Shown in pieces: positions 1,960-48,666 of a stretch of DNA of 64,000 bases. Below the pieces are notes generated by a model. That model did not search any database and was not told the origin of the DNA. It saw only the letters and a program-made list of their open reading frames with translations. A program made the position numbers and the translations under genes. Location: assembly GCA_030704615.1 (NCBI GenBank), contig CM060734.1, positions 59,272,001-59,336,000 on the forward strand. The letters are read 5' to 3'. The stretch's first letter is position 1; each line of letters begins with the position of its first letter. This stretch comes from Takakia lepidozioides (taxonomy: Eukaryota > Plantae > Bryophyta).

Positions 1960-2335
1960 GTCCCGTCTCGAAATTGTTACAACATTGGGTGTAACAAAAC
2001 TTTTCCTAACCCAAGTCCAACGACTGGTGAAATACAATTCGGCCTCAAGATACTGATAAAGCGGGTATCGAGCATTGATGTGACCCCTACGAAGGGTCGG
2101 AGAATCTCTCAGGTTCTGAGTGGACCCGTCCGGGAATTGTTACAACATCGGCTGCAACAAAAACGAATGTAATATTTCTGGGACGACTGGATTACCGTGG
2201 CATCACGATAATGATAAAGTGGGTATCGTGCATTGATAGGACTGCGACAAAGGGAGTCTGAGAAAATCTGAGTTTGGGAGTGGGCCCGTCCGTCCGGGAA
2301 TTGTAGCAACATCGGGTGTACAAATAAAATGAATG
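1960..2335. repeat. Diverged ~160-bp tandem repeat, about 2.3 copies
   Basis: CCCGTC..GAATTGT(T/A)..CAACAT.GG.TG recurs at ~1962, ~2124 and ~2284. GATAAAG.GGGTATCG.GCATTGAT recurs at ~2055 and ~2213. Confidence 0.7.
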
Positions 2336-7400: not shown

Positions 7401-10400
7401 CTTGTTTGACAACTGTCTCTTTGTCACAATAGTTAGGTTGCCTGAATCATGATATTAACATCCGTGACAGCTGACTTTCTCTTTTCTGACTGAAGCTGAG
7501 GTCCCACCTATTCGTTGGTCAACTTGCTTGCATGTGAATGTTAAGGGGTATCATGAAAATTCTGGAAGAGATTTGTGTTTATGGTGCCAATGAAATTTCT
7601 CCTTGGAGCTGGTTATGGTTTTTCTCCTTGAAGTGAGGAGAGATTTTAAACATGCTTTTGTTGGAGAATTGACAGTGCCTATTGAAGAAATCCTTGTGTT
7701 TTACATGCCAAGAAGCAGGCAAAATCTTGTGTCATAACCCTGCCCAGGCATTGGCAATCTTTTTTTATCCAATTGGGCCGTGAGTGAGAGACCTCAGTAG
7801 CTTTATTTATGGTACCCTGCTGAACAACGAGAGGTACAGTATGCTTACTGTATTGACAGGCTGTCCTTTTTTGATCGCAGACCTCTAAAGGTCTTTAACC
7901 TCAATTTATATGTGGTAGATGTTAAAGCCTCCGTGGGTCTGGTGGCATTTCAAAGAAAAAGCAACTGAACACTTCAAAGGTTTTGGAGTTGTGCAACCCC
8001 AAATCGGAGGAGGGGGAACCACAGCTAGCTCATTCTTTGCCACCTCTCGGAACAGGCCCCAGATCAATGCTTAGGAATCATGTGATCTATGGTTCCAAGG
8101 TCTTAGTGCCTGGACAGGGCCAGAGAGGGATGAGGTCACTCCAGCTTGAGAGAGTGTTGACTATATGTTAAGACTTCCTGAGTTGGGATAATTCATACTG
8201 CAGCCTGGTTATGGGAACAGGTAAGCTCTTCAGAGAAAATCCTTGAACTGCTCACTCAAGGAAATGCTCGGCGGAAGACGGAAAGTACTGATGCCAATGC
8301 CACCTCATCACGGTGAGTGACAGCTAACTTCAGCAGTAGGTTCAATATTATAATTTTTTCTAGCCTAACTTGTACTGATAAGCTTAGTCATCAGGTTGTT
8401 TAGAGAACATTCCTCTGTCCTTATTTTTTGCTTTAGTAGTGCAGAACCTGCTTAAGGTTATGCTTGTTCCCAAGAGAACCACTATTACAGCGGTGATGGC
8501 TGACAGTCTGCCAGAACATCAATTTTTAGTCTTCTTAGCTCCCTAAATGTAATAAAATTCTTACCATCTGTAATGCAAGTAGAATACAGTTGGGTTTCTG
8601 CATATCTCATCTTGCTAACATCTTGCTTTACTGTCGTATGGGGAACAGTTCTCATGCTGTTCTGGAGATTATTGTGAAAAGAAAGCAGCGGAATCAGTAT
8701 CGCTCCCAGATACTGCGCGGCAAGCTGGCTCTTGTGGACCTGGCTGGCAGGTTGTGTGATGACCATTATTTTCCCCTTCCTTGACTGTATTGAAGATCAG
8801 GCAAACTCAGTTCTCAATATGCAAGTCAAATGCACAAGGGAAGACATGTTGTCTGTTGGTCACTTGTGTCTCATCTAGCACATGGTCTTGGATTGATCTG
8901 CAGAAATTTGGGCTGTTCATATGTCCAGAATGGCAGTTGATATGGAGACTAAGTAGCTCACCAGCTTGATAAGTGTGTTTCCATCCATTCAGGCCTCTAG
9001 TCAGCAGTTATTAGGGGCCTATGATCTGGGTGATCCTTAGGGCTTCCTCTACTAATGCTTTGAGGGCAAGTCCAATGTGCTCTTGTAGAAGCTTGGAAGA
9101 AAAGGCCAGTATGCTTTATGGGTCCAGTATGTGGACTTCATACAAAACTAGCTTTCTATATTGGTTGATTGGCAGAAAACTCGTATGAATTGAAGGATCT
9201 TCTCTGACACTATGCACCAACATACTTGTTCTGATTCCTGCACTGCTACATTTTCCTAGGCTGTATAAAGGAATACCTCTCTGTCACAGCAGTAAACGTC
9301 CCTTGTTTCCCACTCAGAGTATTCCTGGTTTCGTTGGCATTCTGATGCACAGTGAAAGGGCTTCAGAGACAAATAATGCTGGCCAAAAACTAAGGGATGG
9401 TGCCAACATTAATCGCTCATTGCTGGCATTAGCCAACTGCATCAATGCTCTTGGCAAGCAACAGAAGAAAGGTCTTGCTTATGTTCCATATCGTAACAGG
9501 TTTGTGATCTTGGATCTTTTGTCTCCTCTTGTAGGGCATTCACTCTTCTCTTGTTTTTCTGTAGAAATATTTATAAGCCTACTGTCCTGCTTGACCATTG
9601 ATAGTACAATTGCATTATTAGCACCTAGAAGAGATGACTCTCTCTCTCCCCCTCTTTCTCTGTGATTCTGTCTTCCTGTGAGCACTTATTTGGCATTCAG
9701 GATCTTTCCTTCTTCAAATGTCCTCCTTTCTAGCAATTTCACTAGCTAAGGTATGTGCCACTAGTGCGATGGTTGCTGGAGCATTCTCTGCAGACTGAAG
9801 CACATTCCAAATTTGACATTCCAGAAGGTGGTGGGAGGAGGGGAAAACTCTTAGAAGTTAGAACCTAGCACTGTTTGTTGGGATAATTCTAAGGGCTTTT
9901 TATTGTATGTGCAGCAAACTGACAAGGCTTTTGAAGGATGGACTCAGCGGGAACTCACGTACTGTGATGGTAGCTACTGTATCATCCAGTGCTGACCAAT
10001 ACCATCACACTACCAACACTCTCAAGTATGCAGATAGGGCCAAGGAAATCAAGACCCACATTCAGGTAGTACACTCCCTCTCTTGTACAATCTGAAAAAG
10101 TGTGTGGCTGAACAGAGTTGAACTCGATACCTCAGCAGAATGTCTGCCTTGTGCTGATAGTACGAGAATTCTCCGGTTACGAAGGAGCACTCTGACTGCT
10201 ATGACCCTGCAGATCATCAGGATTCAGAAGTTGGGGTTCATGGAAAGATGCTCACCCAATTTTTTCAATTGATCTCCTTGAAGATCTTGGTACTTTGGGT
10301 TGCACTATTGCACCTCGACGATGTAAGTTAGTTGTAAAGGTGTTGTGCCATGACTACTGTTGTGCTATGACACCTTGAGCTCAGGTCAATCCTAATTCTG

Positions 10401-17829: not shown

Positions 17830-19887
17830 ACAGACAATTCGGTCTTTTGCCCCATCTCATCTCCCACCACCAGCACCACCATCGAAATATCAACCAAACC
17901 GAGTGCCTTGTCTAGGTTGTGGTCAGATGTTTGCCCGTATCAGTGGTTTTGCACGTCATCAACATATGTATTCTATGTCCCATCAGTCTTCTCCAGATGG
18001 TCATATACCTATCCCTTTAGCTGTTCCTTCTACTCATGCCTCATAGTGGATTGGGACTCGTGATGTTTTGGGAGCGTTTCATTTAGGTTTGTCCTGTCCC
18101 CGAACGGCTCTATATATACACGCATTCCAACTTCGAAGGGAGATACAACAAGTTGTTTGCTTACCTTTAATTTGGACCGCCTTGCTCTGGACCCTTACGA
18201 CATTGGTGCCAAGGCTGGAGCGACTAAGGCCCAACTACCCAAGAAGGCAGCAGGGCGATTTTTTACTGTGGATAATAAGCCCCCTCCTCCAAAAAATATA
18301 GGGATGATAGCTTGATGACATGCCAAGGAGCCCTGTCGAATACACCTGGTCCACCTAATAAACAACCAAAAATTCCCATGACAATTGTATCAAAAGAAGA
18401 TTGAAGCTCCAAAAATTGGGGACTAAGGAAGAAATTACAACTCAAGAGATATGAAGGTCGGTGTAAAAAGCATTTGGTGAGAAAGCCATGAGCTACCTAT
18501 ATATCCTCTAGTTGAGAAAGAAGTTCTATATTATGGCCGGTATCATGTAGCACGACGACTTGGAGGAAAGAGGTTGCCATAAGGGATAATACCAAAAGAA
18601 ACACCTAACACTCGAATACCGTCAAATGGTGCTAGAAAGCCAGTAGGGGGCACAAAATTTGAAGCCAGACTAGAGGGCACGACCAAACTGTGGATTTGCG
18701 GGGTTGAACAGTGAGCCCTAGGGAGTGGAGTTGGGTAGCAAAGTAATGGAAAGCCAAGATGAGGGCCGGTGATGTGAGATTCTCGGAAGTGGGCAAAAAC
18801 AAAAGGAGGTCCCCCTAATGGATCACCTTGATACGTTCCAGCTACTTCTGACTAAATTATTGAATTATTGTAAGCTCTCAAGTATGGGCATGATGACTGT
18901 GTATAGCAAAGGAGTGGATAAAGCATACAACATTGATCTCACAAAGGGAATGAGTTGATGGAATGTGCCGCCGGCTGATTGCAATTCCTAAAATATTGTT
19001 GTTCAGAAAATTGTTTTGAAGGCGTTGATAACATCCACCTAAATGACAACCCACTCTGGATGAAGGTCAAATGAAGCCCAAATCTCATGTACCACTGTTT
19101 CACAAGCTCCTAGGGTATCGCCCCCAAACTGATGCTGAGAGAAGTGAGAAGAAAAAACATCCCGCTGGGCGCGCGTCTCTCGATTGTCCGGATTCATCAC
19201 CACATGGAGGCAGAACTAGACATCATTGAGAGATAAACAGAAAAAGGTGGTGCCAAACGTGCCATTTCCTCATGGATTTGGACGTTGTAATGAACAAAGA
19301 GTGTAAGCACACAAAAAGATGCAATACATCTAAACCTATCCCCTCGTGATGCATGCAACCAGAGCCGCATCGCAGATTGCTTTGTGGGTAAGCTTGGGGC
19401 TGTTTTGCAAGAACACTAGCTGCTGTTGCAACACTTGGAGCTTTAAACTGAAACGATCTCTTGGGGAGGGGGCATGATAGAAATCGTAGGCTCAAACGTG
19501 CCATGTTGTCCACTAACTTCAAGGCCATCCATTGTGAGCTAACAAAAAGGTGAATATGCAGAGTATCAGTCATTTGATTACAGCTGTGCCATGTCAATCA
19601 TGTAAGTTCTCTTTGCCCTTCCAGCAACATCTCATTCAATGAGGGATCTCCTCCCAATACAAACACGAGCTTGTCTGCCACCTTTCGAACAGTTAGTCAC
19701 TCAAGGTCTGGAGCACTTACGGGATACCATCATGGAACGCGTGCATCGGCACTCCTTTTCCAACATGCTTTCCAATGCTCCTACAGATACAAATCGGCCC
19801 AGGCTATGTCATCTGCTGTATTTATCACCTCCCTTCGAGTTAGACTTGGTCTTCCGCATCCCTCTGTGCTAGGACTACAACGGTATG
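17830..19887 (+). mobile_element. 5' and central part of a decayed CRE-type (restriction-like endonuclease) non-LTR retrotransposon; RT core inverted
   Basis: A C2H2-like finger (CLGCGQMFARISGFARHQH) lies on + at ~17907. RT motifs lie on - at ~18210-19595 (HFSQHQFG, DLHPEWVVI*VDVINAF, QGDPLGGP, AAFLGSWALVAPA). The + strand resumes at ~19600 with PFQQHL..LPPFEQL..LRVRLGLPHPSVLGLQRY. The 5' boundary is uncertain. Confidence 0.75.
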
Positions 19888-20711
19888 GGTAAAAATCGCG
19901 AAACCGATGTGGGAGTCAGGGAGGGCGGAGCTCCGCTCTCCCACCACCAACCACAACTAAATCTGGCAGTCATGACTAATATTTAGGGATCTGCCATCTT
20001 ACCGGTCCTGTAGTCTCATTTTTCTCAATTTTTAGCAATGTCGCTACTCTAACCCTTACTTTCTTCTAGCTACGGCAGCCGCCATGGCGCGAGCTCCAGC
20101 TCGTCGCGCAGCTGCCTTGCTGCTCTTCTTCCTTCTACCTGCTCAGAAAGATCAACCTCTTTTCAAAGCTCCGTTTAAGCTATCTTTCCATAGTTCTCTC
20201 TTGTTGTTTTCTTATCCTCTTATTTTCAATGGTTGTTCACAATCGGCTGTCCACCCGTCTGCATGCTCAACCCACGTCCCAGGAGTCCTCTGTGTGCTAC
20301 GACACCAAGCTACTCAGTTGGGATATCTCCCATCCCCCCTCTCTGTATCAAGCTTGGAGCCCCGCTTCGATTGATCTCCCTAAGGCGACACATCTTTACC
20401 ATCGACCACTTCAAGCTGCCAGTGAGCGTGCTTAGCCTTCTTGCACCGAGTGCTACCTACTTTTTGGCTCACGACAGCGCCTTGGCGAGCTTGGAGGCTT
20501 CACCCCTATCTTTGGCGCCCTTCTGACCTTCAACCGACGAATCTGACTTCAGAGGCTACCTGCGTGAGGAGTTGGAGCTCGATCACCGTAGCTTCCCTCA
20601 CCTCACACCACCTCCAACTAGCTACATGTTGTAATACCAAGGCGACATCCCTTTGGGCGAGGCCTATGGCCGCGTATAGGGTAGAGTCGGCCAACGCGGC
20701 CCGTTCACTGG

Positions 20712-20997
20712 CGTTAAAAGCAGGTGTGGCGGATTCTCGCCGCTACGTGGCGCAATATGATTGAGGTTCGATTATCCCATATCGATTGCCCAGATTCAGA
20801 GCCCCCGAGAGGATATAAACGGGGCGAGCCTCAAGGGAAGATGGGTCGGTTAATGGCTGATGACATGGGCCTCGGTGGTAGGTCTGCCGTCGTCTGTGCT
20901 TTAATCGGCCATCCCTGCCGATTCTGCCCTGGGTGGCCGATTCGGCCTGAGAATTAGGCCGAAAAAGTGGCAGAATCCGCCACACCTGCTTTTAACG
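20712..20997. mobile_element. 286-bp MITE-like unit with 26-bp perfect terminal inverted repeats
   Basis: CGTTAAAAGCAGGTGTGGCGGATTCT (20712-20737) is the exact reverse complement of 20972-20997. Internal hairpin TTCGGCCT..AGGCCGAA at 20941-20963. No outer direct TSD seen. Confidence 0.6.
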
Positions 20998-21050
20998 GAT
21001 GTTTCAGGAGCTCCCCTACTTATAAACGACTCCTAATTACCAGGAACGTT

Positions 21051-22900
21051 GGAATTGTACCAACTTTCACTCTGAACAATACCCTGGTGGACTTGTATGC
21101 AAAATGTGGGTGCATTGAGGATGCACAGGGAATGTTTGACACTATGGCTAAACAAGATACGGTGTCGTGGAATGCGAGGCTTGAAGATTCTGCTGCAGCT
21201 GTACCAAATGTCATTCTGCAAACTACCCTGGCAGATTTGGACAAGGGCAATGAGGCCCATGGCGACATCTACAGAGCTGGAATTGTACCAACTGTCACTC
21301 TGAACAATACCCTGTCGGACATGTATGCAAAATGCGGGTGCATCGTGGATGCAAAGGGAGTGTTTGACACTATGGTTGAACGAGATATGGTATCGTGGAA
21401 TGTGATGCTTAAAGATTTTGCTATAGTTGTACCAAATGTCACTCTGCACACTGCCCTGGCAGACCTGGAAATGGGCAACGAGGTCCATGGAGACATCTTC
21501 AGAGCTGGAATTGTACCAACTGTCATGCTGAATAATACCCTGATGGACATGTATGCAAAATGTGGATGCATCGAGGATGCAAAGGGAATGTTTAAACTCT
21601 ATGGTTGAACATGATTTGGTGTCGTGGAATGCGAAGCCTGCAGGTGTTGCTGTAGTTGTACCAAATGTCACTCTACATCCTGCCCTAGCAGATCTGGGAA
21701 AGGGCAAAGAGGTCCATGGCGACATCTTCAGAGCTGAAATTGTACCAACTGTCACTCTGAACAATACCCTGGTGGACATGTATGCAAAATGTGGGTGCAT
21801 CGAGGATGCAAAGGGAGTGTTTGACACTATGGCTGAACGGATCTGGTGTCGTGGAATGCGGTGCCTGCAGGTGTTGCTGTCGTTGTACCAAATGTCACTC
21901 TACACACTGCCCTGGCCGATCTGGGAAAGGGCAAAGAGGCCCACGGCGACATCTTCAGAGCTGAAATTGTGCCAACTGTCACTCTGAACAATACCCTGGT
22001 GGACATGTATACAAAATGTGGGTGCATCGAGGATGCTAAGGGAGTGTTTGACACTATGGCTGAACGTGATTTGGTGCCGTGGAATGCCATGCCTGCAGGT
22101 GGTGCTGTAGTTGTTCCAAATGCCACTCTACACACTGCCCTGGCAGATCTGGGAAAGGGCAAGTGGTCCATGGTGACATCTTCAGAGCTGGACTCAGTAT
22201 GTGTACCACTCTTCCAGCCCTAGGAAAGGACAAATGTGTCCATGCTGACATAATCAAAGCTGGAATCTAACCTGATATCAGTCTGAAGACTGCCCTTGCT
22301 GATATGTATGCCAGTGATCATCAGCTCCACCTGGAGGCTCAACCTCTTGTCATTGATTCTCATTATGCTTATGGCCCTATAAGCAAAGATCTTCTTGCTG
22401 ATTTATCCTTGCCTCTGCACCAGAAGCGGCAGGCCAGGTTGAATGGCCATGTCAAAGCTGGAATTGTTGTGGAGACCTATGATCAAATGATGGGGGAAGG
22501 GGTGCAGCCCAACCACATCACGTGTGTGTGCATTTGCCATGCTTGTGCAAGCCTGGCAGCCCTGGAGAAGCGCAAAGATGTGCATGTTGACATCATCAAA
22601 GCTGGAGTGGTACCAAATGTTGTCTCCAGCCTCAAACTTGCACATAAGCTGCCAGGTATGTACACGTTCCCTGAATTATCAGGCATGGAGCTTCATGTTG
22701 TTATCATCAAAGTTGGCATTATGCAAATTGTCAATCTGAAGACTGCCCTCTCTACCATGTATGCCAAATGCGGGAACTTGAATGATGCAAGCCATGTGTT
22801 TGATGACACGCTTAAATGAGCTGGGTTCTCATGGAGTACAATGATAGCTGGATATGCTGAAAATGGATGCGGTACAGTGGCTTTCTGGAAGGCCCTTGAT
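21051..22900 (+). pseudogene. PLS-class pentatricopeptide repeat (PPR) gene fragments: five tandem 228-bp units followed by degenerate P-L-S motifs
   Basis: The unit [42 protein letters not shown]...LGKGKEVHGDIFRA starts at 21051, 21279, 21507, 21736 and 21963 (periods 228, 228, 229, 227, 227). Downstream: MMGEGVQPNHITCVCICHACASLAALEK and TALSTMYAKCGNLNDASHVFD..*..SWSTMIAGYAENG. Frameshifts and stops are present. Confidence 0.85.
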
Positions 22901-23619
22901 AGAATTTCTTACAACTTATGAGCTCGCTCACATGAAGCTGATGGGGCAGCTACTTGATCGTGGTGTTATATTGAGAGATCGCAATAACTCGGTTCTACTG
23001 TCTCCCATCCTGTTCCATGTATGTCCCTCCCCAAGTTCTCATTATGCTTATGGCCTCTTGCTATGCATAACTGATGCCTATACAATGCAACCTCCCCCTC
23101 CTCTGTTTTCTGCCCCAGAGACCTATGCCCTGAATGCTGGCAATGAGGCCCTTTTAAATGCACATAGCCAGGATTATGAACAGCCAGCAACATTACATAG
23201 CCATACAAGCCCTTACTGGGATATGACTCGACTAGTCTTGAACAAGCACATTCTTGCTGAGGTAGGCTCCTGACGAAATGAACCTGGACAGGTCATGGTC
23301 GCATGCCATGCTAGTGCAAAAGACTGTGATATGAGCGGGGTTTGTGTCATCAAAATCTGCCTCCACATTCGAGACACTATCTCCAGCATTTGTCAAGGCC
23401 TACCTAAACCCAAGGCTGCAAAAAGGTGGCCCAGCTTACTAAAGAAGGCCGGGGCCTGCACTGATCGGCCTTTGTCTATGATGAGAGCAAGGATTCAAGC
23501 AATGAAGCAGCAGCATAAAGATCAAATATGCCACAGATCCGGACTGGGAGAGGTAGTTTGGAGAAGTGGGAGGGTAATTGCCCTGATCACGGTGCCGGCC
23601 ATTTATGCCCCTATGTGCT

Positions 23620-24220
23620 GGATATATCAGCCAACACGTGACTACCTACATGTAACTCTCCATCATGCACCAACACCGCAAGTCAGACCATCCAGGGAAG
23701 TCCCCTTACATGCTCTGTGTGCTGCCAACTTTACCACCCACTCCTATTGTCGAATGCCACTGTATGTGCTTGATACTTATAACATGAAATCTCAAACTCC
23801 ACATTTCTATGTTCCAGGAGCCTATACCTCCAATGCTAACATTATCCTGTCGACATCTGATATGACAACTATTGTTGTTTATGCGTCTATGCAGTCAACC
23901 ATTTCTGCCACCAAGTGCTGCAAATATCCGCCAACAATCACCAATATGCCTACAACTCTCCAGCCTGCACCAACACCACAAGACATGCCATCCAGGGAAG
24001 TGACCTTACATGCTCCATTTGCTCCCTACACTGCCCCTAACTATAGATGTCAACTGTTGTTGTTCGTACTTAATACTGGTCCCATGAAATCTCAAACTGC
24101 ACATCTCTATGTCCCACGAACCTACACCCTCAATGCTGCCATTATCTTTGTCAACTACTGGCTCCCTTTCCCTTCGCCTGAGAGAAAGCTACAACACTGC
24201 CATCTACCCTAATTTCTGGT
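23620..24220. repeat. ~300-bp tandem duplication inside the Dualen-like insertion
   Basis: ACTCTCCA...TGCACCAACACC.CAAG...CCATCCAGGGAAGT..CCTTACATGCTC at ~23655 and ~23955. ATGAAATCTCAAACT.CACAT.TCTATGT at ~23783 and ~24083. Confidence 0.75.
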
Positions 24221-27200
24221 GCATTGTAAGGATGTACGTACTGCAGCCCGCATGTGGATCACAAACCCCGCCAACAATCAATTTCTATTGCAAGCTGCTA
24301 GTCCCCTTTGACTTTGCCGATTGGAGTCCCTGCCTACCACCTTGCTCGTGTACTTCCCCGACTCGCTGTGCTCCCTCACATGCGCCAACCTACTGCGAAG
24401 CCCCGCGGCTCAATTTTGCTGCACCGACCACCTGTCAGATCATAGGCTTGTTAGATATTGAGCTACTGTTATCACTAGCTTATGTTGTAATTCCTGAGCA
24501 CCCCCTCTGCTCACATTTATTCTTTAAATATGCCACAGCAAAGTCTTGGCCTCTCATCATATCACAACGCTATACCCTTATTGGCTTCACTCACAAATCT
24601 CCATCTCTCATCCTCCACAACTTCAGACTCATCTTGTACTATATTTTCTTCCAAATAAGCACCCCCAACAAGTTTCTCCATCTCATCACAAAACGCCCCC
24701 TCAGGTGTCATATATCTGCCATATCTACACCCTCACATTTTCAGCCCCCTACCTCATCAATTCTTGTGATATCAAATCAATCACACGATCTCTTCATCAC
24801 CCCCTCTAGCATCCTATTCTTGACAGCCATTTCTCCTCAACCTTCCCACCCTCTCAGCTGCCAAGCATCTACCACAATCCAGATCCACATACCATCACCC
24901 AACCCTGCCACCACTCCACACTGTACCTCTCTCCCACTATCTATATCAAGGCCCGCCGAACTCATTCATCCATGGATGTTGTCCTCTTATCCTCTTTCCC
25001 CCACTCTAGTTAATTATATAGTCTCTACCCACCATACACCCATATTCAATTTTTATCCCCATCATGAGAGCTCATGTACAACAAACCTCCTTCATGACCC
25101 CCAGACGAACCCACACACTAACCCACAGGCAATACCTTCCCCCACACACACACAAGCAACTAGCTCCACTAGTACCCACTATGCTAACACCAACTCTACC
25201 CCCCTCATACACTTTCTCCACAACTACCCCCCACGCACCCCCACCCCTCACCCCCTCAAAATCCAACTTATAACCCACTGCCCACATGGACGATATCACC
25301 AGAGACCCCTTGCATCCAAACACTCCTCTCACCACCCACCATCCCACTTTAAGTCCTATCTACTCACCTATGAAACGCTTACACTACTTCGCTCCGACGA
25401 CATCCACCCAAACCCAGGCCCCTATACCATCACTAGCATCATCAACAAGCTTCCAAAGGATCATAAAGACAGATATGAATTATACTTCCAAACAGACACT
25501 ATCACGCTCGTGCCTGCATATCAACACCTTAGTGACCACTTCTCTCCCTTTCTCCTTAACTCTCCTACCAATAACCGTAAACCCACGCACCCAATTGCCA
25601 CCTTTGGGCTCCCTACCTGCGAACACCCATCCCTAGTCACTGCCACCCATAAACTTAGCACATACCCCCCACAACAGCTACTACTCTCACTAATCGTTGT
25701 CATCTCTCCAATCCCCTCAATATGCAATGACTACTTTAGAACCCAACCAGACATACACATACGTTTGCTACTACACCAACTGCATGAGCTACCCACACTA
25801 CCTCATAGATACCTAGCACCCCCACACTACCTACACAATCTCCACGAATCCCTTGACCTACTACAAGCCAAGCCCAGAGTAGTTCACAAGATTCTTGGCG
25901 AACACCTAGCGCACCCAGCTACTACCATACATGAGCTAGATACTCTCACCAACAAATTCCCATTCCTTTCCAAAAATATTCTCACTGCAACCCTCCATGC
26001 CAAGACAGGCATCCCTGGATATCAACCCCCTCCCATGATGCCGCACCAGTCATCACACATTGTTTGTCCAGCCACACCAATGACCTATCTCCAACACCCC
26101 CTAGATCCAACAGTCCCCCACACGCCCTTCTCCTCCCAGTAAGCACACGCACTCAACATACTCACTTGGAATGTAGGGTCACTTGCTACCAACATTCAAA
26201 GCCTTATCCATCTAATGGACTCTACACCTCCGCATATCATTCTATTACAAGAAACTAAACTCAACACACACGGCCCTAACAACTCCTACATCAACAATCT
26301 CTTTCTAGCCTACTATTTGCTATATGGCAGTTCCTTCACAGCCGCACAATGCCTACTTAGACGCTCCGCGCCATATCATCCCACTCGGGGCGGAGTGGCT
26401 TTTGGTATCCTTCGCACACATCACTCCCCTAGCACCACGGTCAAAATACCTGTTGCTCTTTCCCTCTGATCACACCTTCAAATCATCAAACTACACCTCC
26501 CCGCTATCCCTCCCATTATCCTTATCCACTTGTACATGCCCTCACATGCCGAAGATCTCCCCCTGATCCCTGATATCCTACTCACCATCTCTAACACACT
26601 CACACAACCCTCCAACCAATCCCAACACTATATCCTAGCAGGCGATTTCAACAGGGACATTGCCCTCATGGGCCACACATACAATGGTGTTCACAAACCT
26701 CCATCCCCCGTTGACCATGAATGGGCAAAATTCACTCACTCACACCACCTCCGTTATATACCGGCCGATCACCATTACTCCAGACAAGGTGGACTTAACT
26801 ACTCATCCCTCAGTCTTCTTGATGGTTTCTACTTCAAGACACAAAATGACATCCCCTCATACCTCAACAGTCATGTACACATTAATAGTTTATGCAACTC
26901 AGACCATTATCCCGTCTCAGTCACCATCCCAGCATCCATCATCCCCTTTCGATGTATTCCACCCATACATGTTCCACCGCCACAATCTAGAATCTTATCC
27001 ACACTTTGTCGCGCACCTCACTTCAATAAGCTCCCCTTCAAGTCATAGTTACTCGCTTTGATGCGCGCGCCTGACTCCCAACCTGGCCGCCCGGGCCAAC
27101 TTGGAGCTTCGGCTGCTCACCGGGACATAACGGTCCCCCTTTGCTTCCCACTAAACCCTCCACCTATTTGGGACTAGGAGAATTCCCTTTGGTAGATGGC

Positions 27201-30200
27201 AGTCCGGAACAGCTCCCCACTCTTTGGTCGCTTTCCGGCTCGCTCGCTTACTCACTAGTTTTTGGTCACCAACGGGCTTGCACCGTTCTCGGGGTCACTA
27301 CTCCCCTTATATATACTTCTGTAGCTGTCCGCGGGGGTTTCACAACCAGCCATGCCATTTTATGGCGAACCACCACGAAAACCCTCGACTCTCGGTGATG
27401 AGTCGCGGTGAGTCTTGGCCCACTCACTACGGCCCCTATGGACAGTGATGAGTCCCAAGACTCCCCACGACTCCCACCACGAGGTCTCCGCCCCCATGGT
27501 GAGTCCTATGCCACCCCCACTAAGTCCCGCTAAGCTATCACCACCCCTTGTGGAGCCACCCCCACCGCAACTCGGTGTGCGGGGCTCCACCTAGTGAGCG
27601 CCTCCGCCTCCTTGGGTGCCTTGGGCACTCAAAGGGTGCTTCAGCCCCCCATACCTATCGCTGCCGCTGCCCCCACCACAGGGGCAACCCCTCATGTGTC
27701 CCGACCCCCTTGCCCTCAAGGCAAAGGGCCGCGACACACTTCCCCACAATAACATAATCACCTTTCTAAAACACTTCCAGCCAACATCCTTACACCTCAT
27801 GCTAAGACTCTTCGATATACTCTCCGAAGCAAACCTCGCGCAGTCCCCTGACAAAGCATGGAACGACGCCGAGACCATACTCACAACTTCAATGCAAGAA
27901 ATGACCAAAAGTGTGATTGTCACTTACTCTGCCCCCCTTGAAATCCCACAAACTGCACGCTCAAAACAAAATGGTGGCTACCTTACCCGTACTCAAAAAC
28001 GTATATGGACATCACATCTTAACACATACCACACGATCAGGCGTGCCCTCGCTATTATACCCACCACTACCCCCATTCACCAGGGGAACAACTGGACATC
28101 GGATCCACGTATCACTTGCCTAAATACCTTAACAATGTGTCAAGTACTAATGCCACCACCTGCCAATCTTCAAGATACTCCAAAATGGACAGCTGCTCTC
28201 TCCAAAGTTGGCAGAGATGCCAAAAAAGCCGCTTACAATATTACCAAACAAAAAGCCGTCGACAATCACAAAACATTCGTCTCCTCTTTTAACCAATTGC
28301 TACGCGACCACCCCAAAAAAACTCACAAAGCCATCTTTAACCTTGCCCTCAACCCACCCATTGACTGTCTCAAACACAGACACGACCACTTGCTAACCAA
28401 TCCAACGGACATCAACCAAGAAATATGGTCACAAGCATCCTCAACATACACACCTGCAGTTCCAAACTGCTTACATCCCCGTCTCCACTCTGCCAATTGC
28501 ATGTGTAAAGCTAAACACTATCCGTGGCATGATATAGATGGCTTCTCGATTGACAATAGAGGATCCCCAACGGATCGCATCATAGACCTATTCACAATTG
28601 ATCTTTACGAATCATGTCTCAAAAAACTATCAAAATCTAAAGCCCCGGGCCCCGATCTTATACCCAATGCTATACTTCAAGCATTAAACCCTCATCTTCA
28701 CTACCTCATTTTTAAATTCTTTCAACTCTGTTACAAACTAAAACGAATCCCACACTCCTGGAAACACAGCCGGACCATTCTACTCTTCAAAAAAGACGAT
28801 CCTACAGATCTCAGTAATTACAGACCCATAGCACTGGCCAACACCATATACAAGCTATTGACCAGTACGCTCACCACAATGCTATCAAGATATGGCGAGC
28901 AACACCAAATTCTCAGTGACCCTCAAGAAGGATTCCGAGCTACACATAGTACAACACGACAAATACAATATGTTTTCTCCGCACTTGAAGATGCTAAATT
29001 TACAAAGCAAGACATCTATCTTCTATATATCGATTTTAAAAATGTCTTTGGTTCCCTAGACCATGCCAGATTACTTGCTATTATGCTTGATCTTGGGTAC
29101 CCCACCGATGCCGTCCAACTAATATGAAACATCTACACAAACAACACTACTGAATACTTTGGCACACACTATGGCTCCACCCCGCCTATCCCCATCCTTC
29201 GTGGAACTATCCAGGGTGACACTTTAAGCCCCTACCTATTCATTATCTTCCTAGAACCCCTACTTCGCTGGCTAGCTCGAGGCAAGCTTGGCTATCACTA
29301 CAAAACATCCTCAAGTGACATCTCAGCTGCAGCATATGCAGACGACCTAGCCATTCTGGCACATAAACCACAACACCTCAACCGACAAGTTAATAAACTA
29401 CTCAGATTCAACCTATGGTCAGGCATGGAACTCAGCTTACACAAGTGCGCCATTACAGCCGCCACACATCATAGTCGGCTCACCAAAACTGCCATAGCCT
29501 CACATTGTAAACTCTATGTACACTACCAAAACACACCCTTCCCCTTCCTAGGACCAGACGAGCCATACACTTACTTAGGCATACAACTCGTTCCCTCCCT
29601 TACTTGGCATATCCAAAAAGAATCTACATCATCCAAACTCACTACCAAAAATATTGCTCTGCTCAAATCCCCAATCGCCATTCGACCAAAACTATCAATC
29701 ATTCAATCAGTACTACAAACACAAATTCAATACTCGTTCCACGCCGCACCCTTCTCCTTATCAGACATCAAAAAACTTGATAAAAGTATTATCCAGCTAA
29801 CAAAACGTGTATGTGGTCTACCAACTAGCACCCCTTATGCCCTCACACAACTACCTATGGACCACTACGGCATTGGTTCGAGCCCATTAATCATCTTATA
29901 TGCTCGCACATTAGGCACCCAATTAAAAGAAGCACTCAACGATCCTGGGCGTCTAGGTATCATTTATCAGGGACTTCTCAAATACCTTGCATCTAAATAC
30001 AATGGCCTATACTCATTATCATCCCTGCACCCACAAGCCTGACTACACTCCCCCACTGCACGCACACTACTCATTCTGCGCCAAATGAAAATTAGCATAC
30101 AAACTGATCTGCCTGACTATCCTAACACCTCATCATCCTTAGAACGCGCATGGCTTACAAGCCCTTCTCTACCACAATTTGATATTTCTTATCCCAAACA

Positions 30201-32909
30201 AAAGGTCCCTATCCTCACATATTTCAAAGAACGACACATCACCACCCTCACCCAACTTACTACCGCCATTGGCCATAGACTCTTAAAACCTAGCGAATTT
30301 CCTCTTAAATTCTCCCGAGCCACGATCAAAACCAATTGCTACCTACATCAACTTCGTACCCTCTTCTGTCATCCCTCAACCGCCTGCACTCTACAATGTG
30401 ACCTCCCATGCCTCTACTATCCGCATATGGCTCAAGACCTACTCCCCCAGTACCGTTCTACCTCTACTACCTCCATCTACCAAACACTCAAAATGGTATA
30501 TGCCACCAATACCCATACAGACATAGAATCTGATTTCCCCTCTCAAGTAACTAACACACAACACCCTGAACCTATCCGCCACTTGCATACGCCATCCAAT
30601 CCCTCACCTACAAGGCAAGGATCCCACACCCCCCTAACCACCGCACCATCCCTCCCATCTTCACCACAATACGTCGACAATAACAATGCTTACATCATTG
30701 AAGCTATACTAGGAGTTAAAACCCAAACGTCCATCGATGCCTTTGGAGCCACCTGCATTGATACATACTATCATTGTCAATGGGTTGGGTACTCTTCCGC
30801 AGACAACCCATGGCAGATAGAAGACGACCTCTTCGGCCTACATGACGATTGCGACCCCGAACACAATCTTGCCCTCCTCATCACCTTCCATAAACAAACC
30901 AACACCAACTCTAACACACATGCACCAACAACACACCACTCCCGCCCAACCTACAGATAACAGATATATACACCAACCACTCTATGCCCCCAACGTGCAC
31001 ACGAAGCTCTTCAATGGGCAAAATTTGTTGCGCACTCCTCTCCTACTGCATCCACAATCCTCATCCTCATACAACAAAACACTCCTAATATCTCTCACCC
31101 TCTTCTACAACTCCCAGAAGGGGTCAATCTACTCACCACAATTGACCCAAACCAGCTTAAGTATATTCACACCCCTCTTCTTCCCAAATATCTCAAACGG
31201 AAGGAACCCACCATAACTCTGATTCTACACATCCAAAACCCTCGGCATACAGCCATACCGCAATCTTTCTTTTCTCAGCTCGAACAATTGCTCACCATCA
31301 CTCATAAAATAAAGGCCACCATCCATCATCCAACCATCCTCTCCCACACCCATACACCCACCACATTGTCCCAGATCAAAACCAACAAAGCTTGGAACAT
31401 TGCGACACCACGCCCTTCCCAGGTCGCGCCAACAACACCTCTACCCCCAATCCCTGCAATATATCAACAAAACACCATCCCCAAATACCCACTGGCCAAT
31501 TCACATTACACTGACGGATCCCTCACCAAACCTAATGTAGGGTATGGAATCTATCACGCCGGCACCAGTCAAGGTGTTGCCCTCAGGCTCCCTGGCCCTG
31601 CCACCATCCTCCGGGCTGAACTCATGGCCATTTATGATGCCCTCTCTCTACTTGACACCTCCCCCCCCCCCCACACTACATCTTCACCGACAACCTTACC
31701 TCACTATTCCTCATTCGCAACCACATCTTCCACCCCTCTGCCCATCATCATCACCCCGACCGCAACCTCATTACCGCTATTGTTCAGAGGGCCATCTCCC
31801 TAGGCCACCCAGTCCATATACTCAAAGTCCGTTTGCATACTGGCATCCATGGTAATGAAGAAGCAGACCTACTCGCCCAACTCGGTGCCTCCCAACCCAT
31901 AGTTGAACCCTCGATCGACCCTATTCACATCGCCCACACCCATCCCTTTTGGTTCATACACCCCGTTCTGGACCCCCCTGTACCCAGACCAGTCCGAAAC
32001 CTCCTGACCACTCTGACCAGAGAAGCAAATAAACAAGCGGCAACCTCCATCAGCCATACCAAAGTACACATCCAAAAATGGACTCAATCCAATGTTCTGC
32101 ACCATAAACTCTCCAATCATTTCTGGCTAACCAAAGCCACCACCGACGCACAAATCTGACAAACACTCAAATTCCGATATGCCCAATACATGGGCCACCA
32201 GCGCAAACACATCTTCTGGCCACATCTGTTCCCATCCCCATACTGCCCGTTATGTGCAACCACCCACCAAGCTCATGACACTTGGCCACATCTCCTCAGC
32301 CAATGTACACACCCAGTTATACATGGCTTGCATATCACGCGTCATAACCAAGCAGTCTGGCACCTCCATAAGCTCTTTCTAAAACGTGCTGAAACCCGTT
32401 GGTTCTCGCTCATGAATGCAGGCACCTACCAGGGACGGCCACCCGACCACACAGTACCACCATGGCTACTACCATGCATATGTACTCGATCACCATGCTC
32501 GTGCCCCACTCGATTTTGCCCGGACATACTCCTCGTCCAAGGTCTACCTATCAACACTTTACCCCCCACCTCACCATCCCCACAACTCACCATCCATTTC
32601 ATTGAATTCACATTTTGCCATGATCGTTATCCAAACGATTCAATCTTAGAAAAACGTCAAAAATATGCCCCGCTTATCCTTGCATTCCGAAGTCGTGGCT
32701 GGAAAATCGGCCCATTAATCGTCATCACAGCCGACACTCGAGGTGACATTCATAACGCCAGTATCACGGACATACACGATAACTTTCAAATTCCCATTCT
32801 TCCTATCCACAAATGTTTCAAAGAAATCCATCTCACGGCACTCCGTTCACTCACAGCTATTATCACCAACAAACGCCAACTGGAATCCGGCACTTCAAAC
32901 GCACCTTAG
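24109..32909 (+). pseudogene. Disrupted single polyprotein ORF of the Dualen-like element (~2,700 aa reconstructed)
   Basis: ORF pieces at 24109, 26215 and 26530 share one frame, separated only by single stops. After removing the solo LTR the frame continues into 27616, 29425, 30085 and 31288; one frameshift at the poly-C run (~31660) leads to 31833 and 32190. APE: ILTWNVGS, LLQETKL, GGVAF, LAGDFN, LDGF, SDHYPV. RT: KAPGPD, YRPIAL, QEGFR, IDFKN, GTIQGDTLSP, YADD. RNase H: YTDGS, RAELMAI, FTDN, HTGIHGNEEAD. RLE: CPLC..H..C, RHN, PDIL, IEFTFC, KRQKY. Confidence 0.9.
27007..27736. mobile_element. Solo LTR (730 bp) inserted in the Dualen-like ORF
   Basis: Termini TGTCGCG...CGCGACA with a 5-bp TSD CACTT (27002-27006 and 27737-27741). 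Internal TATATATA at ~27307. Excision restores the frame SRILSTL|PHNNIITF. Confidence 0.92.
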
Positions 32910-33100
32910 GTCCCCCGGGATACCCCTGGGTACCTAGGGGTACCTTCGCCCCCTCTATTCTTAACGGTCACCTGGTGTCCCCCTGGACATTTTTTTGTTA
33001 TAGGGCCCACCCCCGAAAGGGAGCAATAGCCGCAAGGTGAAGTGACTCTTAGTTACGCCGGCCTTGGCCGGAGTCTTCTCTCTCTCTCTACAACGGTATG

Positions 33101-35895: not shown

Positions 35896-38800
35896 CCGCA
35901 TTTGGCAAGGCCAATCTGTTTGAGGACTTCGAGGCCCATGTCGGGAACCTCTATGAAGATCTGGATGCCAAGGCACATTTGTCTGCCCTCTTCCCGTCTC
36001 TCTCGTTTCATTCAAGGTTCCGTACCGATGTTTAAAACTAGAAACAGTTAGCGTCCCTGAAGATTTTCAAATTTATCTTACGAACTGAAAGCATATTTGA
36101 GTTACAACTAGTGGCTTTACACAATAGGCATAGCTCAGTCTCTGAACACAGAACCAATACGTCTTGCCATGGAGATTTAAAATCTACGCTCAGTCTGTCG
36201 CAGAGAATTCTACTGAGGGTTGATGAATCATGACAGATACGAGCAACCGGCATGTTTCATAAGTTTTCCCGGCGGATCGAGTGGTTGGAAGCCCTCTACT
36301 CTCATGCCAGTGCCCTTGTAAGACTCTTTTTCATCTATGTATGTCTTATCTCTCTGTAGGAATCTACACTCCTTGAAAGGTTTTGATATTGACCTAATGT
36401 GGTCCGACAGTGCAAACTTCCTGCCTGCATCAAGTTATGCAAGGTTTCTTTTGGTTATGCACATACACGAGGGCATGGAATCAAATGGGTGGAAGTCGCA
36501 GGGGGCATTGGCAAGAATACTGCGGGAAGAGGGGCGCAAGAGCTTCAATCTACGGTTCAACATCATATCCATGTTCTTCATGTTCTCTCTGTTCCCAAAG
36601 TTCCATCAGGTATGGCATCTCCAATGTTACTCTCCAAGTTATGGAAGCATCTCCTGTAAGCCAGGTAGCATGACAGGTTCTATGCTTACTACAGACACAG
36701 GAACAAACAGCCCAAAAGGAACAAACAGCCCAAAATGACGTAAGAGGTGAAGAAGGCAAAGCCTCTATGGCATGAGTAATTCAGACTACTCTTAGTGCAA
36801 AATATCTGTGCATTCAGAAAAGAGCTCATGACAAAATATGCCTCGAGAGTTTTGACAGAGTCAGCTGCCAGTTGAGGTGCTGTGGCATGTCTACAGTTTC
36901 TTTTGGAACAAAAGATTGGGAAGACCACCCTGAGCATGCTGGTCCTTGAGATCCAATGCACGGAGACACAGCTTGTCGAAGTATGCCAATCTGTCTTCTT
37001 TTCCATCATTTCAACTGCAGTTGAGCTCAGATGAACGCAAATAGTTGTTCATAATTCCTGACAGTCTGTTCTGTCCAAATAATTCAAACAAGTTGAAGCT
37101 TTCACACTGTATAAAGTGTTTCTGTGCTCATCATCACACTAGTCTTCATCAGACTCATTTCGCTTTCACTTCGTTCTTGTCTAGATTTCAACTGTCATGT
37201 GATGTGTGGAACAATGTTCCCTTTTTGTTGTGAACTGTCTAAAGAAACACCCACCTTAACTCATTTAGTAGAAATGCTGATCATCACCCTTGGTACGTAT
37301 GACATGAAGAGGAAAACCGCAACACCACCCTTTTCAAGTGCATGCAAGGAGTGGAGCATTGCAGACATTGGCAGCACACTCCAAAACTCTAAGCAAGTAA
37401 GCTGGGCCTTGGTACAGTCACACGGACAGCAACCCATGTCAGGAGAAAGTGGGAACAGCAAACACTAGCACGAGAAGGCGTGAATCATTTAATTGAATCT
37501 GCCATGTCGCTGCGGGTGACTGACTTGCATGGATTATAGGAAATGTCGAAGGCATTCTTGAATTGTCTCTTTTTCCATCTCTTTCTCTGTCGCATAAGCT
37601 CTTTGAGCTTTCCAGGATGTTATTAAGTACCATTCATTTCATTTCTGTTCTAGTACTGTCTCCGCCTAGACCCTTGGCCTTCTGTGGACTAGCCATCTTC
37701 TCTATCCATTAGTATACCAGGCCAATAGGGAAAAGGAGATCTTGCTTGCAATCCGTGGAACTTAAATGAGCTATGTTACAGGAAATGTTGCTTTACATGG
37801 CCATCAGTTTGCTGCACAATATAGCTGAGAATGTCAGCGTGGAGAAGCGAATGCAGAAATGCAATCTTGTGGTTGGTTTCCCTTCCCATGGTGTGCTCTT
37901 GGGTATCCTTTTCAGTACGGCTCAAAATAAAGCAAGGCACACCTCGCATTGAATAATCCCATTGTCAACCCATTTTGCTGTTCACTTTCATGATATTGTT
38001 ATGAATATGAACTGACCTTAACAGAAGTAAGAAACAACAGATTTTATTACGTATGGGGGAGGCACATAGCTTGTACTTGGTGAGGATCTCTGAGACACCT
38101 GGGTGCATTCGTTCACCTATGCATCGGAAAGTGAATAAGAGCTAAGGCCAAGCACCCGGCCATCAATGGTCTAATTATGCATAACATAATCCAACTGTTT
38201 GGATTGCTGCTTTCTGTGACAGGAACATTTATGTAAGATACTCACCAGAAAGAGTGTCACTCTGCTGACCATGTAAGCTCCCAGTTTTGTACTCCTGTCT
38301 TCCTCCAAAATCTTCCATTATGAGGATCAGAAATGCTTGGCAGCTTACCTGCACGAGGCCTTGACCCTTAGACAATCCCTTGAGCAGTAGTTGCTTTTGG
38401 GCTGTTTTTTGGCTCTGGTTTTTCCCATTTTGTCCCATAAGCTCTTTGAGCTTTCCACGGACGTTATAAAGTACCACATCATTTGTTTCCTCGCTTGTAG
38501 TATGTCCATTCAAAAGCACTCTGAAGGGAAGTCTAGGAATCAGATGTCAGGAACAAGTTCTTTCTCAGGATGCTTGTGGTGTTCAGGTGGTCCTGGTTGG
38601 GTTGAAACAGAACAGTCTCGTTTTTGAAGAAGTTGAGTATCTTCAAGGAGAACAAGAATTCCATGAAAGAGAACGGCATCATTAACGGACTCTCTGTTCT
38701 CTTCCCTTGCCCAAATGAGGTTGGTGCTCTGGCTCCTTTTTCTCCCACAGTGCCGTACTATGTCCACAATGTATGCTCATGCTTTCTTGATGGGATACAC

Positions 38801-44538: not shown

Positions 44539-44819
44539 GTATGACTGCTTTTCAACTTTGAAGACATGTCAGACAAACCATATCTAAAGCTCCCATTCTC
44601 TGGGTATGATGCAGAAAATTTCTGGACCTTTCGATCTGGTGCAGAGAATGGGAAGGGATGGGAAGGGATTGATGAGTAGTCTTGTTGTTAGAGCTTGTCC
44701 CATATGTGCTTTGCCATTGTTGTTGAACAGTACAAAGTTCTTTTCTTTCCCTGTCACTCTCCCATCTACCTCCTCAACTTTCTCCACTCATATATATGCA
44801 CCATTTGGGTCGTGGCCAT

Positions 44820-46185
44820 GGAACTTGATGATTGGGCTGTAACCTCTCAGTTCCACACCACTGGACAAGCAGGCTTCCGGCGCAACTGGTCCACCCTTGA
44901 CCACAACTTCACTCTTCGAAGTATGGTAGAATGGGCAACCTGCGACAGAAAAATGGTATATGCTTGCTTCGCGGACTTCCGAAAGGCTTTCGATTCCGTC
45001 CCTCAGGCCCTACTTCTTGAAAGATTACATAGGATGCAGGTCTCTCCAGACCTCACATGGGCCATTTTATGCATGTATGAGACTGTCATTGGCATGGTGA
45101 AGGTTGCAGGGAAGATCTCCAAAGAGGTGCACAGCAACATTAGGGTCAAACAGGGCTGCCCTCTCTTACCTACCCTATCTGGCATCTATATAGATGCTTT
45201 GGAAGGATACATTGTGATTTCACGACTTCAAGCTCTTGCTGCTTGAAGAGGAAACTCCGATCTGCATGGCCATTGAAAACCATGATCTTAGTTGTGCTTA
45301 GGTTCACCTGCAACTAGTCTTTGGATAAGTCAACCAGGATGAAAAGGTGTAGTTGTAGGAAGACAAGAACTTGTACCAACAGAACAACATCATCAGTGTA
45401 CAAAAGTACTGATTGTGTTGGTCCCCCATCGAAAAGCACCCCACTCCATACCCATGCCTGGGGCTGGTTATCCACTCACCCAATTTTCAGTTTGCATCCA
45501 CTGCTATGGACGATTGACAAAGGGAAAGGCTGCCTCCATACGCCTTCAGGCTTAATGCAAACTGATGGCTGAGTTCTGGGTAGCTGGTGTCCCAGTTTCC
45601 TGGTGGGAAAAAAATCTAGAACCAATGCAATTGTCTTCCCTCCAGGAAATGCTTGGAGCTAGAGGGACAACACCATCACCAATTCTATGTGCAGTATTGC
45701 ATGTGTCCCACTTCAAACCGAGGCCACCTTCCGGCTTACCTCTTTCTTACAAGGTTGCAAGCCCTTCCGCCCAAAGGGTTGACATTCCGGGCCCTCACAA
45801 CATCTAGCAGGCTAAAACAGCTAGTTGCAAAAACCTCCTCAGGTCTCCAACTTCTTTGGGCACCATGGATTCTCCCTGGCTTCAAGACTGCCACAACATA
45901 CGGAGGGAGGTGGAACTTCGTCCAAGCGTGACCGCAACCTGAGGCATCAGACTTCATATCAGACAAACCTGCTAACCAGCCAATTTTACAACAAAACTGC
46001 AGTTCTATTGAGAGCCATTCTTGGTCCTCCATGATGGTAGAATCTTGCAGCCCAACTGCCTGTCTGCAACCTTGATCAAGGCTGTTTCCAGGCTGCTTGT
46101 GCAGGGTACCACTCTCTTTTCTTGTTTCATTATTTCCCTTGTCCCATAAGCTCTTGGAACGTTATGAAGTATCATTTCATTTCTT
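44820..46185 (+). mobile_element. Second copy of the same RTE/RTEX-like LINE family, with an internal inversion
   Basis: QAGFRRNWSTLDHNFTL, FADFRKAFDSVP, KQGCPLLPTLSGIYIDALE on +. The YTDD segment lies on - at ~45213-45430. Tail GTCCCATAAGCTCTT..CATTTCATTT at 46141-46185. Confidence 0.78.
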
Positions 46186-48584: not shown

Positions 48585-48666
48585 AGCTTTCTTCACCAAT
48601 ACAACAGCAATCTCCCCCTCCACCAACCTCCTCTTCTTCGTCTTCTCTCTGCCCTTCTCTCCTACT

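Follow-up and report, generated by a model that had tools for sequence, protein, structure and literature searches.

Retrotransposons that lack long terminal repeats (non-LTR elements) and belong to the Dualen clade, named RandI in Repbase, are defined by the joint presence of an apurinic/apyrimidinic-type endonuclease (APE) and a restriction-like endonuclease (RLE), a combination that is unique to this clade (PMC5029228, PMC9977147, PMC3708506). Surveys name green algae as its only hosts (PMC4438587), and cryptophytes were added later (PMC5029228). Its reverse transcriptase (RT) has been placed between the RLE and the APE clades (PMC4640811), and the group has been treated as a curiosity of algae and protists that stands at the transition between restriction-like and APE endonucleases (PMC4438587, PMC4640811). 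All eight RandI families of Repbase 16.10 end in simple repeats and none in poly(A); for land plants, mostly flowering ones, L1 and RTE are the only clades of long interspersed nuclear elements (LINEs) in that release (PMC3472496). Here, we describe a locus in a 64,000-nucleotide stretch of the genome of the bryophyte Takakia lepidozioides (contig CM060734.1, positions 59,272,001 to 59,336,000 of the forward strand), which is referred to below as the window and to which all coordinates belong unless another locus is named. According to our analysis, the interval 19888-33087 represents, with a probability of about 0.85, a single insertion of a non-LTR retrotransposon of the Dualen/RandI type, dead but full-length, in the genome of a bryophyte. 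No report of Dualen/RandI in a land plant was found in the searched literature, Repbase and Dfam entries lying outside that search. Dual-endonuclease LINEs as a kind are already known from green algae and cryptophytes, and the one described here lies in a land-plant genome.

The enzymatic part of the element is encoded in a long frame on the plus strand. In the open reading frame (ORF) reading of the 64-kb window, this frame runs from 24088 to 31800 (modulo 3 = 1), has its first ATG at 24109, and carries in-frame stops at 26140, 26467, 29125, 30040 and 30958. It carries on in modulo 3 = 0, with one extra stop at 32157 and the terminal stop at 32907-32909. The sole frameshift of the LINE body lies at about 31671, within RNase H, where alignments to an intact relative change frame. 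The frame is damaged by six stops, by a single frameshift and by one solo LTR, exactly the count given in the original prediction, which had been made from the letters of the sequence. That prediction had also placed APE, RT, RNase H and a CCHC knuckle with RLE in one frame, and Pfam, motif and fold evidence located all of them where it had put them. The catalytic signatures of APE, RLE and RT are still legible in this broken copy.

The LTR-like insertion between the APE and RT regions starts with TGTCGCG, finishes with CGCGACA, and is flanked by a 5-bp duplication, CACTT, at 27002-27006 and 27737-27741. The LTR and one duplication (27007-27741) together span 735 nt, a length divisible by three, so that the frame continues unshifted past it; the excision of this interval that had been proposed as a check does keep the reading frame. 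No second copy of the unit at 27007-27736 was found in the 64-kb window. These features fit a solo LTR that inserted later into the LINE.

The last 249 codons (32160-32906) contain a CxxC..H..C knuckle, RHN, PD, an IEFTF strand and K..KY, and this piece had no Pfam match and no sequence match among solved structures, so that the fold search alone identified it. A scan of the piece against 1.84 billion cluster representatives returned 846 matches at E<=1e-3, 307 of them at E<=1e-10, and the longer matching representatives always had RNase H directly upstream. An AlphaFold model computed from an alignment with 59 of the matches reached a pLDDT of 91.9 and a pTM of 0.88. The best seven Foldseek matches to this model were all R2 proteins (probability 1.00, E 5e-6 to 5e-4), followed by Prp8 and then by viral cap-snatching nucleases. 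With the VIA aligner, the model scored Z 15.9 to residues 1027-1390 of R2Tg and Z 14.7 to residues 776-1107 of R2Bm, which are the C-terminal knuckle-plus-RLE parts of these proteins; the next best score was 8.5, and the further matches included many PD-(D/E)xK nucleases. The best-kept positions of the family alignment (the knuckle C/H residues, RHN, PD, E and the lysines) are all present in the window copy. Because of the fold matches and the signature residues, the C-terminal piece is recognized by its modelled structure as a genuine R2-type restriction-like endonuclease. The matches of the same piece in the ESM Atlas were unnamed animal clusters, some of them with zf-RVT.

To place the locus, we used relatives consisting of DNA fetched around matches in ENA assemblies: L007 and L010 (both from ERZ25073694), L011 (ERZ24794443) and L012 (ERZ24794430). 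In all four, the domain following the 2A-like site (post-2A domain), APE, RT, RNase H and RLE are collinear on one strand, with protein identities of 25-65%. L011 and L012 contain ORFs of 1,007-1,289 aa and are therefore near intact. Further loci were collected by an RT-only probe, and hence without bias towards the RLE. As far as the contigs reach, two of these (L019 and L026) contain the post-2A domain, APE and RT, and two others (L031 and L033) contain RT, a PCIF1-like domain, RNase H and RLE. A distant relative, L032, has an uninterrupted ORF of 2,965 aa (37-8934) with APE, RT, RNase H and CCHC-RLE, supported by Exo_endo_phos at 28.4 bits, RVT_1 at 91 bits, an RNase H match and an hhalign probability of 97.4% (E 1e-11) for the CCHC-RLE. 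The expectation that intact relatives may exist is thus borne out by the near-intact L011 and L012 and by the intact ORF of L032. With relative P0002 as the query, no related locus was found.

Some of the relatives have peculiarities of their own. L032 has no 2A site and an ordinary base composition, and its RLE-like module is followed by a low-complexity tail of about 330 residues. The copies L002-L006 have RNase H-RLE and APE-RT on opposite strands, and both halves belong to the same family; either an inversion or two truncated copies would explain this arrangement. In L002 (3971-10952), RNase H-RLE with the 3' untranslated region (UTR) meets post-2A-APE-RT tail to tail at a (TA)n stretch near 6500. 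L012 (3050-3057) and L008 (10252-10261), which come from different samples, share a frame switch in RT motif B, after QGDTLSPYL; the switch may be a lesion handed down by a master with a defective RT, or else a deliberate frameshift.

The insertion limits were set by a 13-bp target-site duplication. The sequence CTACAACGGTATG is present exactly twice in the window, where 0.03 occurrences are expected, and two copies were seen in 0 of 100 shuffles. By this flanking duplication, the mobile unit covers 19888-33087; its length is 13,200 bp and was 12,465 bp prior to the arrival of the LTR, and the full extent including the duplications is 19875-33100. The limits 24109-32909 of the original prediction stand for the frame but not for the element, since the unit starts at 19888 and 4.2 kb of its 5' part had been missed. 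When the flanks were rejoined at the empty site, an open frame of 169 codons extended over the junction, which lends slight support to these limits. A zinc-knuckle motif that seemed by eye to be split by the insertion in this empty-site ORF was dropped, as the flanks match no RLE profile and no Pfam family.

The sense strand of the LINE is strongly depleted in G. Between about 24,000 and 33,000, it contains 29% A, 35% C, 12% G and 24% T, the composition of the flanks is balanced, and the G-poor composition is uniform along the LINE body. Close copies (L002, L007-L012 and L019) have 9-15% G on the sense strand and encode proteins in which H, P, T, N and Q abound. In the distant relatives L031-L033, the composition is ordinary, with 20-22% G.

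The 3' end has the simple-repeat tail that is typical of RandI, though not defining for it: (CT)n in the window and (TA)n in L002. Upstream of the tail, a GNRA hairpin with an AGUAG-like motif is common to L002, L007 and L011, and it is the sole clearly conserved hairpin among the four sequences. The single-sequence fold of the window 3' UTR was no more stable than shuffles (z -0.79). On this thin evidence, the conserved hairpin would fit recognition by the element of its own 3' end.

The coordinates of the element, of its parts and of the neighbouring genes are listed in Table 1.

Table 1. Features of the inserted element and of its surroundings in the window.
Feature	Position	Strand	Remarks
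Target-site duplication, left	19875-19887	+	13 bp, CTACAACGGTATG
5' end of the inserted unit	19888-20957	+	G 23%, host-like; no Pfam match
Degenerate PLS-type pentatricopeptide repeat (PPR) array	20958-22816	+	Pfam PPR E 4.6e-15; PPR_1, PPR_2, PPR_3; G 26%
Open stretch, 453 codons, one stop	22848-24209	+	No known domain
Pre-2A start of the long LINE frame	24109-25359	+	Low-complexity, P/S/T/H-rich; G 10.6%; not conserved in relatives
2A-like ribosome-skipping motif	25360-25422	+	Ends LLRSDDIHPNPGP; conserved motif in relatives
Post-2A domain, about 220 aa	25423-26139	+	Conserved, predicted helical; tblastn to L002, L007, L009-L012 and alignment
APE-type endonuclease	26143-26916	+	In-frame stops 26140, 26467; motifs WN, QET, GDFN, SDH
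Nested solo-LTR-like insertion	27007-27736	.	730 bp, TG..CA, 7-bp terminal inverted repeats
Reverse transcriptase, fingers/palm/thumb	28640-30039	+	Stop 29125; YADD and flanking motifs intact
RT-RNase H linker	30043-30957	+	First ~120 aa conserved in relatives (BLASTP to P0418)
RNase H	31504-31889	+	Cut by frameshift at ~31671; tblastn junction
CCHC zinc knuckle	32244-32306	+	C29, C32, H44, C49 of the C-terminal piece; RHN after it, 32340-32348
PD-(D/E)xK RLE	32490-32906	+	PD 32520, E 32604, K 32652, KY 32661 (K..KY 32652-32666)
3' UTR, 164 nt	32910-33073	+	GNRA-capped hairpin CCCCC-GAAA-GGG 33010-33021, then AGUAG-like motif (AAUAG here)
(CT)n simple-repeat tail	33074-33089	+	Without poly(A)
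Target-site duplication, right	33088-33100	+	13 bp; first two bases could belong to the tail instead
Kinesin-associated-protein (KAP) exon	36337-36735	+
Intronless DEAD-box helicase 16 orthologue	46722-48626	-
Cytochrome P450 exon	55404-56042	+
PHD-finger protein gene	62497-63402	-

The 2A motif, GDI(E/H)xNPGP, is retained at the same place in L002, L009, L011 and L012, and it is degenerate in L007 and L010. The post-2A domain gave no ESM Atlas match, and its AlphaFold model, computed from a five-sequence alignment, was too poor for a fold search (pLDDT 55). In the APE region, Pfam reported Exo_endo_phos at 26161-26403 with 27.4 bits (cut-off 24.5) and Exo_endo_phos_2 at 26518-26916 with 25.7 bits, and the domain was also found in L002, L010, L012 and L032. 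The RT was recovered as two RVT_1 pieces, 28792-29109 (40.6 bits) and 29185-29586 (57.4 bits), whose motifs align closely with those of the relatives. RNase_H appeared in two frames, at 31504-31653 and 31770-31889, with 18.3 and 21.2 bits, and it scored 54-57 bits in relatives P0001, P0002 and P0418.

The linker between RT and RNase H includes a weak chromodomain-like stretch at 30691-30834 (Chromo 19.7 bits, below the cut-off of 25.1). A weak Chromo/Royal-family-like stretch occupies the same position in L031 (4449-4508) and P0418 (370-430), and all scores of the stretch in distant copies (Chromo 19.7 and 15.5 bits, PWWP 13 bits) are likewise below cut-off. In relatives (L011, L012, L031 and the proteins P0418, P0432 and P0443), a PCIF1_WW, cap methyltransferase-like segment was observed between RT and RNase H, with 35-41 bits against a Pfam cut-off of 31.1. 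A PCIF1-like segment of this kind, about 190 aa long, was not found in the linker of the window copy by Pfam or BLASTP.

The 4.2 kb at the 5' end of the unit differ from the LINE body in several respects. Their G content is 20-26%, as in the host, versus 10.6% directly before the 2A site. The PPR array contains five tandem units of 228 bp at 21050-22192, which are 88% alike, and about five frameshifts scatter it across three frames. The 453-codon open stretch that follows contains a direct repeat of 250 bp (23599-23846 and 23899-24146, 73% identical), which overlaps the start of the LINE frame. Ahead of the array, a perfect 26-bp inverted repeat (20712-20737 and 20972-20997) encloses 286 bp; a small hairpin element or a miniature inverted-repeat transposable element (MITE) could account for it.

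The array is enclosed by the target-site duplication and shares its strand with the LINE, and long open stretches run from it into the LINE frame. This would be expected if the PPR part were a working module: an RNA-binding PPR protein at the N-terminus that is set free at the 2A site and does the work of a LINE ORF1 protein, within a subfamily by which PPR sequence is spread. A precedent is provided by Haematococcus, in which an N-terminal PPR has been described on a 2A-bearing ORF2p (bioRxiv 10.64898/2026.06.17.732966). However, the array has about five frameshifts in 3 kb, which break it into three frames, compared with one in the 8-kb LINE body; it is built of recent 228-bp tandem duplications; its G content of 26% is that of the host, versus 12% in the LINE; and none of the fetched relatives has a PPR upstream of the 2A site. 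We therefore consider a working module unlikely, and the 5' PPR part of the window copy probably does not represent one. Most likely, the 5' 4.2 kb are a host PPR sequence that was captured at the 5' end, by read-in transcription or template switching, and was then co-mobilised. It is similarly doubtful that, in a subfamily of the bryophyte Dualen lineage, PLS-class PPR sequence ahead of the 2A site is inherited with the element. If this were true, LINE retrotransposition would copy and scatter PPR modules, which is a testable route by which PPR genes may have expanded through retroposition in land plants, and in intact masters the 2A-released PPR protein might serve as the RNA-binding partner of the element.

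The assignment of the element to the clade Dualen/RandI is supported by its architecture and by indirect similarity, from which we infer monophyly with the algal Dualen. APE and RLE were found in one element, in agreement with the published definition of the clade, and the Dualen-like dual-endonuclease LINE put forward in the original prediction is retained. The order of APE, RT, RNase H, CCHC and RLE is that reported for Dualen (PMC5029228). The Chlorella variabilis protein CHLNCDRAFT_144235 has RNase H and the same CCHC-RLE module (hhalign 97%). An L1 or RTE affiliation is contradicted by the presence of the RLE and by an RT that, compared with solved structures, resembles R2 more than L1. 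In R2, the RLE is the only endonuclease, whereas an APE is present here, and no N-terminal zinc-finger or Myb domain of the R2 type was found in the LINE frame.

In Repbase, clades are assigned from trees of the RT domain. The pieces of the window RT matched solved structures of R2 proteins at 1e-13 and 9e-12 and those of L1 ORF2p at 2e-4 and 3e-5. The RT of an intact relative scored highest with vertebrate R2s (100-115 bits), ahead of L1 ORF2p (73 bits) and R2Bm (70 bits). These values are compatible with the published intermediate position of Dualen, without being proof of it.

Several observations weigh against the assignment to Dualen/RandI. The RT of the intact relative is about equally close to R2Bm (70 bits) and to L1 ORF2p (73 bits). 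The Pfam scores of the APE are modest, and phmmer matched the domain to no solved APE structure. The RLE signature of L032 is incomplete, with GD in place of PD and with the lysines substituted, so that the RLE may be inactive in some lineages. A Josephin-like protease, which is an accessory domain and does not define the group, was found neither in the frame (Pfam, E<=1) nor in the upstream ORFs of the relatives. No fetched relative has PPR sequence upstream of its 2A site, and the split of labour between the Dualen nucleases is speculative in the literature also (PMC9977147).

A true dual-endonuclease LINE could also have arisen by convergence, if in streptophytes an R2-like (RLE) lineage that is not kin to algal Dualen had gained an APE, or an APE lineage an RLE. 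This would account for the different accessory domains, as Josephin, SET and C48 are absent here and the element has instead a 2A site and a chromo-like stretch, to which relatives add a PCIF1-like domain (PMC5029228, PMC8557442), and for the highest RT scores falling to vertebrate R2. It would leave unexplained the domain order shared with Dualen, the RNase H and CCHC-RLE module shared with a chlorophyte protein, and the simple-repeat tails shared with RandI (PMC3472496). In addition, Dualen/RandI ORF2p with 2A sites has already been described from a chlorophyte, Haematococcus, in which some 2A-bearing ORF2ps start with a PPR or Josephin domain (bioRxiv 10.64898/2026.06.17.732966), and the distant relatives L031 and L032, with their ordinary base composition, bridge the gap. 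Convergence is accordingly an improbable explanation, and kinship with the algal Dualen is the preferred one.

The possibility which the original prediction had named as its refutation, that an APE-type LINE was joined or adjacent to an RLE-type LINE as a chimera or nest and that the long frame is accidental, has a negligible chance and is rejected: rearranged copies do exist, as shown by the opposite strands and the (TA)n junction in L002-L006, but the halves of L002 belong to one family and not to two, one frame spans all domains in the window, the domains are collinear at four other loci and lie in the uninterrupted 2,965-aa ORF of L032, the G-poor composition is equal on both halves, and a single 13-bp target duplication surrounds the whole unit. 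APE and RLE therefore belong to one element.

The surroundings of the element include land-plant genes. The helicase 16 orthologue has 72% identity to its counterparts in Physcomitrium and Ceratodon, 63-68% to those in liverworts, 64% to that in a fern and 59% to that in Selaginella, and one related contig bears a FRIGIDA-family gene. By gene similarity, mosses are the nearest annotated group, and the host is most likely of a moss lineage that has no close kin among annotated genomes. These sequences, together with the nested solo LTR, indicate that the element is a resident of the bryophyte genome and no contamination, as had been anticipated from its position between land-plant genes. An RT fragment at 44695-45243 (RVT_1, E 3.6e-9) is foreign to the Dualen-type element.

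Overall, our analysis supports the view that a Dualen-type LINE with two endonucleases resides in this bryophyte genome, in which it was once active, and that related assemblies contain relatives of it that are close to intact. The element entered as a single unit and left the 13-bp target duplication and the (CT)n tail. Its RNA would be translated as one polyprotein, as we infer from the families involved, and the 2A site would separate the enzymatic product from the one encoded before it. This enzyme may bind its own 3' UTR via the hairpin and the simple-repeat tail, much as "stringent" LINEs and algal RandI do. One of the nucleases would then nick the target to prime reverse transcription, the other may help to cut the second strand, and RNase H would remove the template.

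A Dualen-type family in bryophytes, large and recently active, would extend the clade into the embryophytes. The family includes near-intact copies in growable, transformable organisms and may thus provide material for asking what the role of each nuclease is. It also joins a 2A skip site, a weak chromodomain-like stretch, a cap-methyltransferase-like domain (in the relatives) and a co-mobilised PPR (in the window copy).

Among the known systems, the L1 and RTE elements of plants likewise have APE and RT, and some plant L1s have RNase H; unlike the window element, they have no RLE, and L1 ends in poly(A). The R2 elements (R2Bm, R2Tg and R2Pm; PDB 8gh6, 8ibw, 9dou, 9nl2, 9nl3) have the same knuckle and RLE fold (Z 14.7-15.9) and, among solved structures, the closest RT, but they are devoid of APE and RNase H, carry an N-terminal zinc-finger/Myb region and target the ribosomal DNA. 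The cryptophyte Dualen-1_GCr, a protein of 5,287 aa, likewise combines APE, RT, RNase H, CCHC and RLE with accessory domains; these are SET and a C48 peptidase, whereas a chromo-like stretch and, in the relatives, a PCIF1-like domain are found here (PMC5029228). In the chlorophyte Haematococcus lacustris, the ORF2p has a 2A-like peptide before the endonuclease and, in some copies, an N-terminal PPR (bioRxiv 10.64898/2026.06.17.732966); the likeness is one of description only, some of its copies have Josephin, and the PPR of the window element is degenerate and compositionally foreign.

In contrast to the Dualen of Chlamydomonas reinhardtii, the window element resides in a bryophyte and has a strongly G-poor sense strand and a host-derived PPR at its 5' end; its APE is preceded by a 2A-like site and by a conserved domain that is predicted to be helical. 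A Josephin-like protease has been reported in Chlamydomonas Dualen (PMC8557442), and none was detected in the window element; the target duplication is 13 bp here versus very long in Dualen-4b_cRei (PMC9977147). According to Kojima and Fujiwara (2005), as relayed by PMC9977147 and PMC4640811, DualenCr and RandI-1 to -5 share with it one giant ORF with APE, RT, RNase H, CCHC and RLE. The Chlamydomonas Dualen/RandI elements also share its simple-repeat 3' tail in place of poly(A) (PMC3472496, PMC3747384), and their RT likewise stands between the RLE and the APE clades.

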